The notes below the pieces were generated by a model. It did no database searches. It worked only from the letters and a program-made list of their open reading frames with translations, and was not told the origin of the DNA. 64,000 nt of DNA from Tetramitus jugosus (taxonomy: Eukaryota > Protista > Heterolobosea), in assembly GCA_937625935.1 (NCBI GenBank), contig OW569367.1, positions 62,001-126,000 on the forward strand, given 5' to 3'. A program made the translations under genes and the position numbers. Positions 2,663-50,446 of the stretch are shown in pieces (position 1 is the stretch's first letter; every line of letters begins with the position of its first letter).

Positions 2663-3150
2663 ATGGACGAAGATCCCATCGACTATGGACTCTTTTTTAC
2701 AAAGACGGCACTCTCAAGTAATGCTGGATTGGGAAGAGGGCGAGTAAAAAATGGTGGTCGATCTCGGTACTCTCCTATAGATATGTACAGCATCTTGAAA
2801 ACGAATCCTAAACTTTTTCAGAAGCTTGTCGTTGACACATTTTGGACAAGTTACGAGGTAAGATTACATTAAAACCCAAGAGCTCTTGGGTTCGAGAGTC
2901 AAGTGTGTGAGTGTTATCAACAGACTGTTGTTAACTCTAATCTGGATTACTCATTATCAGAGATACAACCAGTTGTCATCTTTGTTCGGAATCTCTGAGT
3001 TTTGTGTGTCTGTTGTGATACGTGAGACACTACTCTCGTCTCTTTCTTCAGCAAGAAAGAATTAGTATGAAACATAGTTCTCTCAAGGAGATTGTGTTTT
3101 ATTATCGATGGGACAATTCATCCTATTTCCAAGCCGAGGTATGGTCAGCC
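2663..3150 (+). mobile_element. IS5/ISL2EU (PIF/Harbinger-related) DDE transposase remnant
   Basis: Frame 3 from ~2895 reads VINRLLLTLIWITHYQRYNQLSSLFGISEFCVSVVIRE (HTH_Tnp_4-like). After a frameshift comes FIIDGTIHPISKPRYGQ (first Asp of the DDE_Tnp_4 motif DGT...I..P). Truncated after that. Confidence 0.7.
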
Positions 3151-3159
3151 AAGATTCTG

Positions 3160-4250
3160 TTTTGTGAAGACACTTGTGACACCACCAGTCACCAGATGGA
3201 ACTTCATTCAATACTCACACATTTCAAATGACACGAATGATCACATGCCAGAAGTGGATCATCTTCTGATTCCTCCTCCAGACACACAAAACACTCGTCA
3301 GCATTCAAATGATCAAGTTCTTCATCATCAGAGTTGTCTGTTGCTGCAATATGTGTCACTTCACGATCTCTCAATCACTTGGAACGTCTGCTGTCTAGTT
3401 CACTTGAATATTATCTTCTGTTGAATCACATTGTGTGTCCATCAGTATCATCATCATTCACTTGCTTCTCCATTGCTGTCTCTTACTACCACGTCTCTTA
3501 TAATTTCTCTGTTTGTTGTTCTTCTTCTTCTTCTCAGACAACATTCCAGTATTCTGGGGATCAGCTGACACTAGCATGTAGTTGCTTGGCATCTCACCAT
3601 TCAAGAACTCATAGAATTTCTTCCATGCAGATACCAGGTACTATTCCAAACAATATCTCATGTGCCTTTGCATCTGCAAGTGATTTATGAGTATCATACG
3701 TTCCAGTTGCATTATACATGCATACAGAGCAGTTAAACTCATTGGTACCTTCCCTTTCTTCAGATTCTTAAGAATGCCTGTTCCATTCTAGATCTAAATA
3801 TACTACAGCATATCTGTATATGGTATTGGTTTCTCTGGTCTGACGAATAGAGGCTTCACTTGCACTAATGCAAGCAAAGTACCATTGATTCTAGTTACTT
3901 GAGAAGTTCTGATCTTGTCATTGTACTTGACAACTTTGATCAAAGTTGGATCCAGGTCCTGTTGCACATCATAAAGAGCTTTCCAGCATCACTATACTTT
4001 GCTCCATAATAACTTTCTCTCACCACTTTAACCTTTTGCATATGTAAAGCCCACGCCAGTTCTCGAGCTGATCTTTCGTAAAGCTGTATCTTAGTCCCTG
4101 CATTTCTCTTAGTACACTGATGCAATAACTTCTTGATGTTCTCATGTAGACACACTCTGTTTGTCTGTTTACAAAAGCTATATAATGCGATCTCTTCCCA
4201 AGAGTCATACAATGCTTACGTTCTGGATGCAGAAAATACAAACATTCTGC
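3160..4250 (-). pseudogene. Decayed ORF ending in a PHD finger (transposon-associated or host pseudogene)
   Basis: The reverse strand of 3170-3293 reads ECFVCLEEESEDDPLLACDHSCHLKCVSI, then after a frameshift LNEVPSGDWWCHKC: a PHD C4HC3 pattern with one Cys segment deleted. Upstream sequence is coding-like but full of stops, so the 5' limit is uncertain. Confidence 0.55.
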
Positions 4251-45851: not shown

Positions 45852-45940
45852 AAAAAAACGGAGAAAAACATCTTTCTCCGCAACTGTCAGAAAAAAACAG
45901 TGATTTGTGTGACAAAACTAAACAACAAAGAACTCAAACA

Positions 45941-47269
45941 ATGTTTTTCGGCCTGATTTTCTTCCTTGTTCGTTTCTTTGGTTACATTGCACTAGTGTTT
46001 GGTATCATCACCTTTGTGTTTCCACTTGATGATCCAGCATACTATGGCACAGTCAGCAATCGGTCTCATTTGTCAGATGTTGATCATTTGAAACGATTGA
46101 TGGCCCAAAAGAAGAAGCACTCTCCTTCTTCACCTGCTCCCACCGAACAAAAGTCTACTGGAGTAATCTCCGATTCGGATAAATTGAGAGAAAAGCGGAG
46201 AAATATAAAGGCAGAGATATTGTCGACAGAGAGGACCTATGTGCATAATTTGAATGTGCTGCATGATGTATTCCTTGTTCCTATTCGAGAGAAGAAGATT
46301 GTGAATGAAAAAACCCTGAATACCATTTTCTCTCGTGAGATTGACATGATTTTGGAGATTAACCGCATGTTTCTCACTCAGCTAGAGCAGATTCTAGAGG
46401 GTGATCTCACAGAGTCAACCAACAAGGGTAATCACGGAAGTGAGGTTGAGCAATGTGAAAAGCTGGCAGAGCTTCTCCTGAAGCACGCACACTCGTTTAA
46501 GCTCTACATTGGTTATGTGAGTCATTATTCGATTGCAGTGTCTACTCTGAGATCAGAAATGGAATCCAACAAGAAACTGAATCAACTATTGCTGGAGAAG
46601 AAAAAGATTTTGCAGACTCAGGGTGAGCGTGTCACTCAAATTCAAGACTATTTGATCAATCCGATTCAAAGACTGCCAAGGTATCGTCTCTTGTTCCAGG
46701 ATTTGCTGGAGAAGACAGAGTTGAATCATCCGAGCTATCAACAGTTGAAGAAGGCAGTTGATCTCATCAAGGATGTCATTAGTACTGTAAATGAAAAGGA
46801 GGGAGAGCTAAAGAATCAGTTGATTATGCTCGATTTGCACAAGAGAGTGATGAAGAAGGTGCCAGATTTTATCGCACCAACTAGACGATTGAGGGCGCAT
46901 TGTGATGATCAGAATGTGTCCATTGTGTTGGAGGGAAACAAGATGGAGCCATGTTTCCTGTATATTTTCTCTGATTTGATCATTTGCATCTATCAGCAGA
47001 AGGGTCTCAAAAAGAAGGAGAAAGTCATTGCTCAATACATCATGGAGCATCAAGTAACAGAGAAGGGACGAGTTGACTCTGTCAAGATCGTACCAACCGG
47101 TACATCAAAGAATCAATGTAATTTAAAGATTGACACTGTGTATGGATCGAGTCCAATGCTACAAACGAAGAAGGCTCAGACAACAACTGAATCTATCCAT
47201 ATCAGTTGCAGCTCGAGTGAATGCCGTGAGCACATCATGCTTCACTTGAACAAAGTTAACAACACATAA
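45941..47269 (+). CDS. Dbl-homology RhoGEF (DH-PH) with N-terminal hydrophobic anchor
   Basis: EILSTERTYVHNL, FKLYIGYV, YLINPIQRLPRYRLLFQDLL, VISTVNE and PH-like FLYIFSDLIIC. Confidence 0.9.
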   Translation: MFFGLIFFLVRFFGYIALVFGIITFVFPLDDPAYYGTVSNRSHLSDVDHLKRLMAQKKKHSPSSPAPTEQKSTGVISDSDKLREKRRNIKAEILSTERTYVHNLNVLHDVFLVPIREKKIVNEKTLNTIFSREIDMILEINRMFLTQLEQILEGDLTESTNKGNHGSEVEQCEKLAELLLKHAHSFKLYIGYVSHYSIAVSTLRSEMESNKKLNQLLLEKKKILQTQGERVTQIQDYLINPIQRLPRYRLLFQDLLEKTELNHPSYQQLKKAVDLIKDVISTVNEKEGELKNQLIMLDLHKRVMKKVPDFIAPTRRLRAHCDDQNVSIVLEGNKMEPCFLYIFSDLIICIYQQKGLKKKEKVIAQYIMEHQVTEKGRVDSVKIVPTGTSKNQCNLKIDTVYGSSPMLQTKKAQTTTESIHISCSSSECREHIMLHLNKVNNT

Positions 47270-47443
47270 AACAATGGCTTCCTGGCGGTGAACTCTTTTC
47301 CATGTTCGAGAGGTGGTGCAATTTCACGGACCTTGTTTTCTGATCATCATAAAAACGCACCAAAGCCAACCGAAACAATCACAGAACTGCAATAAGCAAC
47401 AACAAAAACAACCGTTATACTACTGTTATTTATATACATTACA

Positions 47444-48823
47444 ATGGTCAAGACATTTGAAGAATACCCACCTGATGTTCTGTTTGAACAATTGCCAAAT
47501 CCTAGTGACTTTGACATGGACGAAGCCATTCAAGCCGGAGATTTCTACAACAAGGGCATTCAACTCGTACTCCACGTGCAAGACTCGTCTGACTTGAATC
47601 GGTTGATTCTAAAGTCCGACAGTTGCTCCATTGAAATTCCAGAGCTGGAGATTGAGATTCCAGAGGGAACAGCACGAGTGTGCACCGTTCATGACTATCT
47701 GGAACAAGTCAAGAGCAATATGGATATGGCGTTCAGTAGTGAGAGCTTGCGTACTCCTGCGCAAAACAAGGTGTTGAACAATGTGGAGCTTGCATTGCAA
47801 GGTCAATGGCCGTTCGATCTGATCCTCAGAGATGTCTTGGGTAATTCAAGGATTCAGGGTGTGGTTCAAGACAAAGGCGCTCAACTCACTGAACAGGTGA
47901 CGGGATTGGAGCTCTATCGGTTGGATCCCAAGATTGAATACCATTTGTTTGATCGCTCAGCAAGAGACAATATTGAACTAGGTATGGAGAATGATAATCC
48001 ACTATTCCAGTCAGTAACTGGCGAAGAAGGAATGAAGTTAGCAATTGAATTGATTCAAAAATCAAACAAGATTGTTGGCTTTACTGGTGCTGGTATTTCA
48101 ACAGAGAGCAACATTCCTGCTTTCAGAAACAACAAGGACGGAGGAAAGGAAAACACCATCTGGAGTGAATATGATGTGAATGACCTCGTGTACTCGAACA
48201 TCATTGCGAATGTAAAGGCAAGAACAAGCTACTTCAAGATGCATGCCATGCTGCATCAATTGATTCAAAAGGCTGACCCAAATGCCAGTCATCGACTCTT
48301 TGTTGAACTGGAGAAACAGGGCAAACTATTGGGAGTGATTACTCAAAATATTGATGGCTTGCACCAAAGATCAGGCGTTTCAGAAGAGAAAGTGATGGAA
48401 CTTCATGGAACTACTCTCCGTGTGAAGTGTGAGACATGTCACAAGAGTGCTTCTTCAGATCCTTATTATGATGAAATCAATAACATGGTTGCCCAGGCAG
48501 TGGATCCACAGGAACTTACTTTCTCTCCATTGTGTGATGCCTGCTCGGGTATCTTGAAGCCAAGTACAATTAGTTTCGGACAAGCATTGGATCCTGATGT
48601 TCTGAAGGGAGCTCAAGAAGCGGCACAACAGTGTGACTTGATGATTGTCATGGGAAGTGCACTAGTAGTTGCTCCAGCTAATCAACTGCCACTGAATTGT
48701 GTGGATAGAAACGTTCCTGTCATTCTCATCAACCTCGGTGAAACACCAATGGATAACATGTGCACAGTGTTGCTGAAGGGCAGATGTGGTGAACTTTGTG
48801 AGCAAATTATTCCACAAATATAG
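47444..48823 (+). CDS. ZPR1-domain / sirtuin (Sir2) fusion protein
   Basis: N-half: KGIQLVLHV..SDLNRLILKSDSCSIEIPELEIEIP..., PFDLILRDVLGNSRIQ, DPKI...FDRSARDNIELG (ZPR1 A/B module). C-half: GAGISTES, TQNIDGLHQ, ELHG, CETC/CDAC, FGQ and GSALVVAPA (sirtuin). Single uninterrupted ORF. Confidence 0.88.
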   Translation: MVKTFEEYPPDVLFEQLPNPSDFDMDEAIQAGDFYNKGIQLVLHVQDSSDLNRLILKSDSCSIEIPELEIEIPEGTARVCTVHDYLEQVKSNMDMAFSSESLRTPAQNKVLNNVELALQGQWPFDLILRDVLGNSRIQGVVQDKGAQLTEQVTGLELYRLDPKIEYHLFDRSARDNIELGMENDNPLFQSVTGEEGMKLAIELIQKSNKIVGFTGAGISTESNIPAFRNNKDGGKENTIWSEYDVNDLVYSNIIANVKARTSYFKMHAMLHQLIQKADPNASHRLFVELEKQGKLLGVITQNIDGLHQRSGVSEEKVMELHGTTLRVKCETCHKSASSDPYYDEINNMVAQAVDPQELTFSPLCDACSGILKPSTISFGQALDPDVLKGAQEAAQQCDLMIVMGSALVVAPANQLPLNCVDRNVPVILINLGETPMDNMCTVLLKGRCGELCEQIIPQI

Positions 48824-48868
48824 TAAACCAGCTTCATGATAGTTTAATTTCTCTTATGTTTACTAGTA

Positions 48869-50446
48869 TTACAATTGATAGATCTCAGTGTACTTTTGAG
48901 TGAGATAGTCAATAAAGTACTTTGGATTAAGTGGTTCACCGGTGGCACGCTCCAACAATTTATCAGCGTTCAAGTCTGCAGATCCTCTCGAGTGAATTCT
49001 TGCAGTCAACAGAGTCTTAATTTCCTTGTATTCACCATTCTCTAGCAACGATTCGAAATTTGGCAACTTTGCGGCGATCTGAGCAGCGATTGCAGCACCT
49101 AGCAGATAAGTTGGGAAGTAACCATAATAACCCATGCCCCAATGAACATCTTGCAAAATACCTTCAGTATCATTGGATGGAGTAATTCCCAAATAATCTT
49201 GCATCTTCTTGTTCCATACGTCTGGCAAACCATCAACTGAATATGTTCCATCGAACAATCCTCTTTCGATCTCATAACGAAGGATAATGTGAAGTGGATA
49301 AGTCACTTCATCAGATTCAACTCTAATAAATATTGGTTGGACAGTGTTGGCTGCTCTGAACACCTCATCAACCGATACTGAATCGGGCAAGTGAGGGAAA
49401 GCAGTTCTGAACTGTGGCCAGAATCTCTTGAAGAATGGCTTACTCAACGCGACATGTCTCTCCCAGAACAATGACTGAGATTCATGTACTCCCATGGACA
49501 GTGCGTTAGAGACTGGTAAATTGGCATACTCTGTTGGCAAGTTTTGTTCATACATGGCATGACCGCTCTCGTGAACCGTACCAGCCAAACCCTGCAAGAA
49601 TTCAGTGGTTCTGTACCTGGTCGTAATTCTGACATCGAATCCAGGAGCAGGACTAATGGTGAACGGATGAACAGACACATCAATTCTTCCACTCTTGAAA
49701 TCATATCCAATCTGCTCAGCAATACTCCTGTTCAACTCTTTTTGCTTCTCAATTGGAAAAGCGCCTTCTTCACCAGACAAGTACGACTCATCAATCGTCA
49801 CCTTGTTCTTTGCTTGTTCAATCTTTTGAATCAATGGAACCAATGATTCCTTGATTTGACCAAACACTTGATCAATTCTCTCGCACGACAACCCAGATTC
49901 ATACTCATCGAGACACACATTGTACGCATCTTGCTCAGGATCAATCAATCCACTCATTGTTTTCTTCAATTGAATCCATTGGGCCAAGAAGGGAGAGAAC
50001 TGAGACCAATCACTGTTCTTTCTTGCATTGACCCACGAGTGATAACCATCAGAGTTGAGCTTACTCTGCTTTTCAATCAATTCCTTTGGTACTTTGACCT
50101 TTCTGTCATATTCATGTCTCGCGAGAACGATATTGGCTCTCTCAAACTCATTCAATGACTCTTCATCACCACCACTGCCAGTCTGCTGTTGTTCTTGTTG
50201 TTGTGAATCAACAGAGTATGAAGCCAACTCTTGCAATAGCTTACCAATCTCAGGATGAGTCACGTGATCGTACACGATTCCACCCAACAGTTGCTTTTGT
50301 TCACTGCGAGGAGCTGCTCCTTGCTCTGGCATCATGACCATTTCATCCCATTCCAACAAGTACTCGATGCCCTTGAGTTGACCAATTTTCTTCAAGTGTT
50401 GGCACAGTTGGTTGTATTGGGATCTTACGATGCTGCTGGAAGACAT
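48869..50446 (-). CDS. Carboxypeptidase Taq (peptidase family M32)
   Basis: HPF, DVRITTRY, HESGH (HExxH), HESQS, IRVESDE, QDVHW and GYFPTY. Confidence 0.95.
   Translation of the reverse strand: MSSSSIVRSQYNQLCQHLKKIGQLKGIEYLLEWDEMVMMPEQGAAPRSEQKQLLGGIVYDHVTHPEIGKLLQELASYSVDSQQQEQQQTGSGGDEESLNEFERANIVLARHEYDRKVKVPKELIEKQSKLNSDGYHSWVNARKNSDWSQFSPFLAQWIQLKKTMSGLIDPEQDAYNVCLDEYESGLSCERIDQVFGQIKESLVPLIQKIEQAKNKVTIDESYLSGEEGAFPIEKQKELNRSIAEQIGYDFKSGRIDVSVHPFTISPAPGFDVRITTRYRTTEFLQGLAGTVHESGHAMYEQNLPTEYANLPVSNALSMGVHESQSLFWERHVALSKPFFKRFWPQFRTAFPHLPDSVSVDEVFRAANTVQPIFIRVESDEVTYPLHIILRYEIERGLFDGTYSVDGLPDVWNKKMQDYLGITPSNDTEGILQDVHWGMGYYGYFPTYLLGAAIAAQIAAKLPNFESLLENGEYKEIKTLLTARIHSRGSADLNADKLLERATGEPLNPKYFIDYLTQKYTEIYQL

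Follow-up and report, generated by a model that had tools for sequence, protein, structure and literature searches.

A 64,000-nucleotide (nt) window of the Tetramitus jugosus genome (contig OW569367.1 of assembly GCA_937625935.1, positions 62,001 to 126,000 of the forward strand) carries a gene for a protein that joins a domain of the ZPR1 family to a sirtuin. Unless a contig is named, all coordinates given here are positions in this window, on the plus strand. The coding sequence (CDS; 47444 to 48823) is a single exon of one unbroken open reading frame (ORF; 459 amino acids [aa] plus the stop codon), and every orthologue of the fusion protein that we aligned shares its start methionine. The 5' untranslated leader (47361 to 47443) was delimited from the starts of RNA contigs, which lie at 47382 (contigs X4 and X5) and 47403 (X9), with a loose end of X4 reaching approximately 47361; it contains an in-frame TAA (47393 to 47395) 16 codons before the ATG. 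The stretch is present, wholly or partially, in 20 public runs from 15 studies (8 of the runs are recorded as RNA). RNA contigs from three independent soil metatranscriptomes span both halves of the gene, running from 47382 or 47403 to beyond the stop codon without joints or indels in the CDS, and a run from a related organism yielded a 1,397-nt contig over 47436 to 48832. The intergenic stretch between the upstream RhoGEF gene and the fusion gene (approximately 47230 to 47381) was uncovered in all three metatranscriptomes, which provides an internal check that the contigs derive from RNA and not from contaminating DNA. The fusion gene is therefore one expressed, intron-less gene. It has the ZPR1 module and the sirtuin in frame, as the original prediction, made from the sequence alone, had read it. 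The same prediction left no room for an upstream exon, and this also holds: the RhoGEF ORF (45905 to 47269; PF00621) ends 174 nt before the ATG, and the in-frame stop codon lies between the two.

The N-terminal half contains a ZPR1-type jelly-roll/beta-helix domain (aa 36 to 181; 47549 to 47986), which was recognized by Pfam, profile, and structure comparisons. The jr-ZPR1 family PF22794 matched aa 50 to 180 (E = 2.3e-18; 66.8 bits versus a cut-off of 27), and the module was 31% identical over 160 aa to the A-domain of the canonical ZPR1 of the same genome (BLASTP; E = 3e-16), with a weaker match to the B-domain. A profile built from the N-domain family matched mouse ZPR1 (2qkd; E = 6e-38), with 74 bits to the A-domain and 57 bits to the B-domain. 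Among representatives of the whole PDB, residues 32 to 181 of the AlphaFold model superposed on the 2qkd A-domain with a Z score of 15.1 and a root mean square deviation (rmsd) of 2.2 A over 132 residues. The ZPR1 A/B module had previously been identified from short motifs, and those motifs recur in the alignment with the genome's own ZPR1.

The C4 zinc finger that precedes this domain in ZPR1 had been reported as absent, and we found the same. The zinc ribbon PF03367 had no match in the fusion protein (Pfam) or at its locus (six-frame genome search), the first 60 residues hold no cysteine, the N-terminal segment has no cysteine pairs, and the leader carries the stop codon described above. The finger is missing from every member of the fusion family. 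Moreover, the fusion has a single jelly-roll stretch, whereas canonical ZPR1s give two finger-plus-jelly-roll modules. The fusion protein starts with a conserved, cysteine-free segment (aa 1 to 35; 47444 to 47548; predicted local distance difference test score [pLDDT], >90). In the family alignment, this segment shows the conserved start M-K-T-F and, further on, the block HFD..EAV...YY.KG; it is probably what is left of the lost zinc ribbon. Within the jelly-roll lie an alpha-helical hairpin insertion (aa 82 to 118; 47687 to 47797; model helices at aa 82 to 96 and 105 to 118) and an insert that is found in the fusion family only and not in canonical ZPR1 (aa 141 to 160; 47864 to 47923; pLDDT of 74 at aa 141 to 150). 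A short ordered linker (aa 182 to 199; 47987 to 48040; pLDDT of 91 to 98) leads to the second domain.

The C-terminal half is a sirtuin catalytic domain of the bacterial CobB-like type (aa 200 to 459; 48041 to 48820), identified through PF02146, NF040867, the structure 1ici, and Foldseek. The SIR2 family PF02146 matched aa 215 to 411 over the whole model (positions 1 to 180 of 180; E = 6.5e-41; 140.7 bits versus a cut-off of 24). Both profiles expected of the fusion (i.e., ZPR1 and SIR2) are thus above cut-off, and the E values of both halves are far beyond chance. Alignment located the NAD-binding GAGIS (aa 215 to 219; 48086 to 48100), TQNID (aa 300 to 304; 48341 to 48355), the catalytic His321 of ELHG (48404 to 48406; aligned to Sir2-Af1), and a zinc-binding module of Cys329, Cys332, Cys364, and Cys367 (48428 to 48544), so the sirtuin is as complete as had been claimed. 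An IPAFR motif (aa 224 to 228, with its FR pair at residues 227 and 228) is followed by a loop insert of approximately 7 aa that occurs only in the fusion family (48113 to 48160 for the motif and loop; loop pLDDT of 66). The resemblance to bacterial CobB and class U sirtuins, likewise proposed earlier, was borne out, with CobB/class U-III as the type, by the best family and structure matches of this half (i.e., CobB, Sir2-Af1, and Sir2Tm). Residues 179 to 459 of the model superposed on Sir2-Af1 (1ici) with a Z score of 29.1 and an rmsd of 2.4 A over 250 residues, and Foldseek gave template modeling scores, by target, of 0.83 to 0.88 for the sirtuin fold.

On the basis of these residues, we predict that the C-terminal domain is an active-looking, NAD+-dependent lysine deacylase. 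It is not a CobB equivalog, given that its score against the CobB equivalog model NF040867 (199 bits) is below the cut-off (320 bits); the scores against other CobB models are below cut-off too. A Tyr-x-x-Arg pocket accommodates succinyl and malonyl groups in SIRT5 and CobB. In the alignment, His and Leu occupy the positions at which the acidic-acyl pocket of Sir2-Af1 has its Tyr and Arg, and SIRT5-like desuccinylase specificity is therefore unlikely.

Downstream of the fusion gene, and convergent with it, lies a gene for an M32 carboxypeptidase (48869 to 50446). The stop codons of the two genes are 45 nt apart (48824 to 48868), and RNA contigs cross both; the 3' ends therefore abut or overlap, and the contigs show nothing beyond that. 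On the other side, the RhoGEF RNA contigs stop at 47214 to 47229 in all three metatranscriptomes (i.e., 40 to 55 nt short of the stop codon at 47267 to 47269), and the RhoGEF gene may therefore have a 3' end or a last exon other than the one that the ORF alone indicates.

The search for relatives showed that the architecture is shared. A 99%-identical form occurs in other data sets, and orthologues were found in Willaertia magna (KAL9646873.1; 479 aa; 39% identity at full coverage), Naegleria fowleri (XP_044557446.1; 471 aa), Acrasis kona (KAL0478296.1; 450 aa), and Pelomyxa schiedti (KAH3763460.1, here P0074; 451 aa), with two further ones on metagenome or transcriptome contigs. The N-terminal half of the metagenome/transcriptome orthologue P0004 lies in a small upstream exon (L014:3595-3804). 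These relatives came from an exhaustive profile search; a word-index search with the N-domain of the fusion alone returned only proteins of the same lineage. The catalytic motifs are kept in six of the seven family members, the exception being the Pelomyxa model. All deposited orthologues are annotated only as hypothetical proteins or generic deacylases, and we found no description of a ZPR1-sirtuin fusion in the literature searched, that on Zpr1 and eEF1A included. The original prediction knew of no described fusion, and the protein is apparently undescribed, its orthologues being deposited yet unstudied; as an architecture it is not unique, being present in the Naegleria fowleri, Willaertia, Acrasis, and Pelomyxa deposits.

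The sirtuin halves of the family are 42 to 48% identical to one another and 40 to 46% identical to bacterial-type sirtuins of approximately 255 aa, while none of the other 11 sirtuins in the genome is more than 30% identical to them. In the sirtuin tree, the seven halves form one clade (Shimodaira-Hasegawa-like approximate likelihood ratio test [SH-aLRT] support, 95) nested among bacterial-type sequences. The sirtuin halves of the fusion thus have a single origin. Both the sirtuin tree and the jelly-roll tree place the T. jugosus protein with Heterolobosea, near Acrasis and Naegleria. The simplest history compatible with these relationships would be one acquisition of a bacterial sirtuin, one fusion, and then inheritance within Heterolobosea, the route of the Pelomyxa copy aside.

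The fingerless module is also found on other enzymes. The 26.35-Mb genome contains four jelly-roll domains (two in canonical ZPR1, one in the fusion gene, and one in a protein on contig C7). The separate canonical ZPR1, whose presence had been raised together with the fusion, lies on contig C41 and has two ribbons and two jelly-rolls in 501 aa. The C7 protein (C7:587688-591503; L007:1692-5504, minus strand) has 1,271 aa and a jelly-roll at aa 47 to 180 without a ribbon; it continues as AMP-binding, carrier, and thioester-reductase domains and is thus like a carboxylic acid reductase (CAR), with a score of 525 bits against NF041592, below the cut-off. A word-index search with its N-domain likewise recovered only same-lineage proteins, the sole relative found elsewhere (P0123) being 90% identical.

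An exhaustive search of 1.84 billion representatives with the N-module profile gave 1,258 hits, of which we inspected the best 150. Nearly all of these 150 were two-module ZPR1s, and those with a single module that starts at residue 1 comprised the CAR-like enzyme, a protease protein of 390 aa, two fragments, and the sirtuin fusions. The protease protein (P0152; L013:8001-9173 of a JGI metagenome contig) joins the fingerless module, with the same M-K-T-F start as in the sirtuin fusions, to a Peptidase_C39_2/C70-like papain-fold protease. In the jelly-roll tree, the fingerless modules, nine in number, are grouped together (SH-aLRT, 81) and are distinct from 29 canonical A-domains and 29 canonical B-domains; as to their ancestry, the fingerless modules, A-domains, and B-domains are separate groups, and pairwise scores favor A. 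The protease-linked module falls within the sirtuin-linked ones, with that of the Acrasis sirtuin as its neighbor (support, 93); shuffling of the module between enzymes has therefore taken place within the amoeba group. A fingerless module of 161 aa was also called as a gene of its own on a Logan contig (P0251; L025:472-957); it overlaps a downstream 360-aa ORF with a membrane helix, and the neighboring ORFs match no recognizable family.

N-terminal additions are common among the approximately 12 to 13 sirtuin loci of the genome. Those on contigs C14, C44, C32, and C42 include TPR plus SIR2 (twice), zf-UBP plus SIR2, a weak CAP_C-like domain plus SIR2, and a sirtuin of 635 aa in which 360 unassigned residues are followed by SIR2. 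Targeting by accessory domains is therefore the local rule in this genome.

Taken together, these results lead us to favor, with moderate confidence, the view that the N-terminal half is a lineage-specific, rigidly packed, and portable ZPR1-derived accessory module on a deacylase of bacterial ancestry, with a role that is most likely partner recognition or regulation. In the mechanism that we propose, the N terminus of a CobB-like sirtuin would carry a single ZPR1 beta-helix/jelly-roll with its hairpin, the zinc ribbon and the tandem duplication having been lost. The module, fixed to the core, would select a partner or regulate access to the cleft and so decide where and on what the deacylase acts, and the sirtuin core would then take the acyl group off a lysine using NAD+.

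Four points weigh against this view. The Ala of I-P/S-A-F-R is present in seven of seven family members where bacterial relatives have Asp, and all fusion members have the insert of approximately 7 residues after this motif, from which the bacterial relatives are free; with this Ala and with an insert beside the NAD pocket, catalysis may be unusual or weak. The Pelomyxa model lacks the stretch from QNID to the catalytic His and has a low-complexity segment rich in Pro, Thr, and Ser instead, which looks like a retained intron or a mis-modeled exon, or else a decayed enzyme. The known range of partners of the module is a lower bound, based as it is on the best 150 of 1,258 matches. Finally, predicted models do not separate partner recognition from an intramolecular role.

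Such an intramolecular role is the main rival. The module would then need no outside partner and would tune the attached enzyme, for example by covering the substrate cleft like a lid, by stabilizing the protein, or by offering a surface for oligomerization. The AlphaFold2 model of the fusion protein, computed from a 78-row alignment, has a mean pLDDT of 94.9 and a predicted template modeling score (pTM) of 0.89, which implies that the domains are packed against each other in a fixed way, although with approximately 7 full-length rows a high pTM is not proof of a native interface. The model of the Naegleria fowleri orthologue gave similar values (pLDDT, 93.9; pTM, 0.86), and in both orthologues rigid packing of the domains and an ordered linker are predicted. 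This predicted packing and the constant position of the module directly N-terminal to the catalytic domain are what an intramolecular function would lead one to expect. Nevertheless, one and the same module would have to suit three unrelated catalytic folds, and we consider this explanation unlikely, if the most serious of the alternatives.

A feature search of the ESM Atlas with the fusion protein gave no matches, and a shape search of the same resource gave plain sirtuins only; there is therefore no large metagenomic cluster with the two-domain shape. The conserved N-terminal Lys was considered as a pseudo-substrate in the sirtuin cleft and was set aside: the protease fusion has the same N terminus, and the isolated beta-bridges seen in both models would fit local pairing inside the module as well.

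The original prediction had instead aimed the sirtuin at the elongation factor eEF1A or another translational GTPase, with the ZPR1-derived module as the dock and NAD+ status as the control on the acylation or biogenesis of the factor. Parts of the published work describe Zpr1 as chaperoning eEF1A by way of the protein's zinc finger as well as its alpha-helical hairpin (PMC10869706, PMC11790920), and Aim29 and GTP hydrolysis as driving release in this cycle (PMC10869706, PMC11790920, PMC13350734). The module shares homology with the A-domain of ZPR1 and keeps the helical hairpin, one of the two elements which, in those parts of the work, Zpr1 uses on eEF1A (PMC10869706, PMC11790920). The second element, the zinc finger, is missing from every family member, however, and no other region of the module is as poorly conserved as the hairpin: its identity is 17 to 20% among the fusions and 14% between the fusions and canonical A-domains, compared with 28% within canonical A- or B-domains, which span far wider taxa. 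In the same alignment comparison, the beta-strand cores are 35 to 52% identical, versus 14 to 28% for the hairpin. The genome also retains a full ZPR1 for the chaperone job, and the CAR-like enzyme that bears the same module, a small-molecule enzyme, has no obvious business on eEF1A, which speaks against a role dedicated to that factor. The occurrence of the fingerless module on this enzyme and on the C39/C70-like protease is better explained by a generic accessory module, and the proposed targeting is not supported. By homology only, eEF1A may be counted as one candidate partner, and we rate a sirtuin docked there as improbable.

A broader version of this idea, to which we give slightly less credence again, treats the fingerless module as a portable docking adaptor that still recognizes eEF1A or a related translational GTPase and would bring a deacylase, a cysteine protease, and an adenylating reductase to it. 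If it were true, Heterolobosea would possess a toolkit of eEF1A-directed modifiers built from a chaperone domain.

It is also conceivable that fingerless modules pair with one another and thereby bring the CobB-like sirtuin to the CAR-like enzyme, whose catalytic lysine it would deacylate. CobB deacylates the catalytic lysine of acyl-coenzyme A synthetases, and AMP-forming enzymes are its classic substrates; here, the sirtuin and the CAR-like enzyme of one genome both carry the module. Additionally, the CAR-like gene is followed downstream, on the same strand and at a distance of approximately 1.6 to 1.9 kb, by another sirtuin gene, which has two exons (approximately C7:584938-585960; L012:2938-3960, minus strand; GAGLS exon near L012:3956 and second exon at 2938 to 3783). 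The chance expectation for such a neighbor is approximately 0.003 (approximately 13 sirtuin loci in 26 Mb), in a test that was chosen post hoc, and this sirtuin is 21% identical to that of the fusion. The CAR fusion was found in this lineage only, whereas the sirtuin fusion has a much broader distribution, and identity between the two modules is just approximately 24 to 27%. We therefore regard pairing of the modules as very improbable.

The explanation that the assembly or the gene model had joined two genes into a chimera, in favor of which nothing was found, has a negligible probability and was rejected on the basis of the unbroken frame at 47444 to 48823, the independent RNA contigs that span the junction in several studies, the 99%-identical proteins in other data sets, and the full-length orthologues in at least five other organisms.

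The reading of a portable accessory module on a bacterial-type deacylase thus remains the one that we prefer. The fusions show that the ZPR1 beta-helix, stripped of its zinc finger, has found a second use as an enzyme add-on; that such a fingerless domain is portable is a new finding. The sirtuin fusions also define a small subfamily of sirtuins, bacterial in ancestry and not noticed before, whose members occur in Pelomyxa and in Heterolobosea, the pathogen Naegleria fowleri among them. The partner of the module, once found, would assign a function to a sirtuin without an animal counterpart and would tell what the ZPR1 beta-helix recognizes alone. In other respects, this is an ordinary case of domain fusion and does not bear directly on any question of long standing.

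Among known systems, the prokaryotic CobB-type sirtuins (i.e., Sir2-Af1 [1ici and 1m2n], Sir2Tm, and Sir2-Af2) share with the fusion its catalytic core, namely, the Rossmann fold, GAGxS, QNID, the catalytic His, and the four-Cys zinc module. The fusion differs from them in its 200-aa N-terminal ZPR1-derived domain, the Ala of IPAFR, the insert of approximately 7 aa, and its score below the CobB cut-off, and from Sir2-Af1 in the His and Leu at the acidic-acyl pocket.

With ZPR1 and yeast Zpr1 (2qkd), the fusion module has in common the beta-helix/jelly-roll, the helical hairpin, and the core motifs. It lacks the zinc ribbon, is single and not paired, is linked to an enzyme, contains the insert at aa 141 to 160, and occupies a separate branch of the tree. 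With neither the ribbon nor the tandem arrangement, the fusion is not a functional member of the ZPR1 family. The archaeal ZPR1 homologues (TIGR00340) resemble it in having a single module; unlike the fusion, they keep the zinc ribbon and stand alone. The fusion module scored 39.6 bits against this archaeal model and 52 bits against the eukaryotic one. To our knowledge, the ZPR1 beta-helix is known only from the essential eEF1A chaperone, and no description of a ZPR1-type accessory domain on a sirtuin was found in the literature searched. The macrodomain-fused SirTM (8rsn) and the sirtuins of this genome that are linked to TPR, zf-UBP, or lipoyl-carrier domains follow the principle that the target or the regulation of a sirtuin is set by an added domain, as we propose for the fusion; the accessory folds of these proteins differ from that of the fusion, in which the corresponding place would be held by a beta-helix derived from a chaperone.

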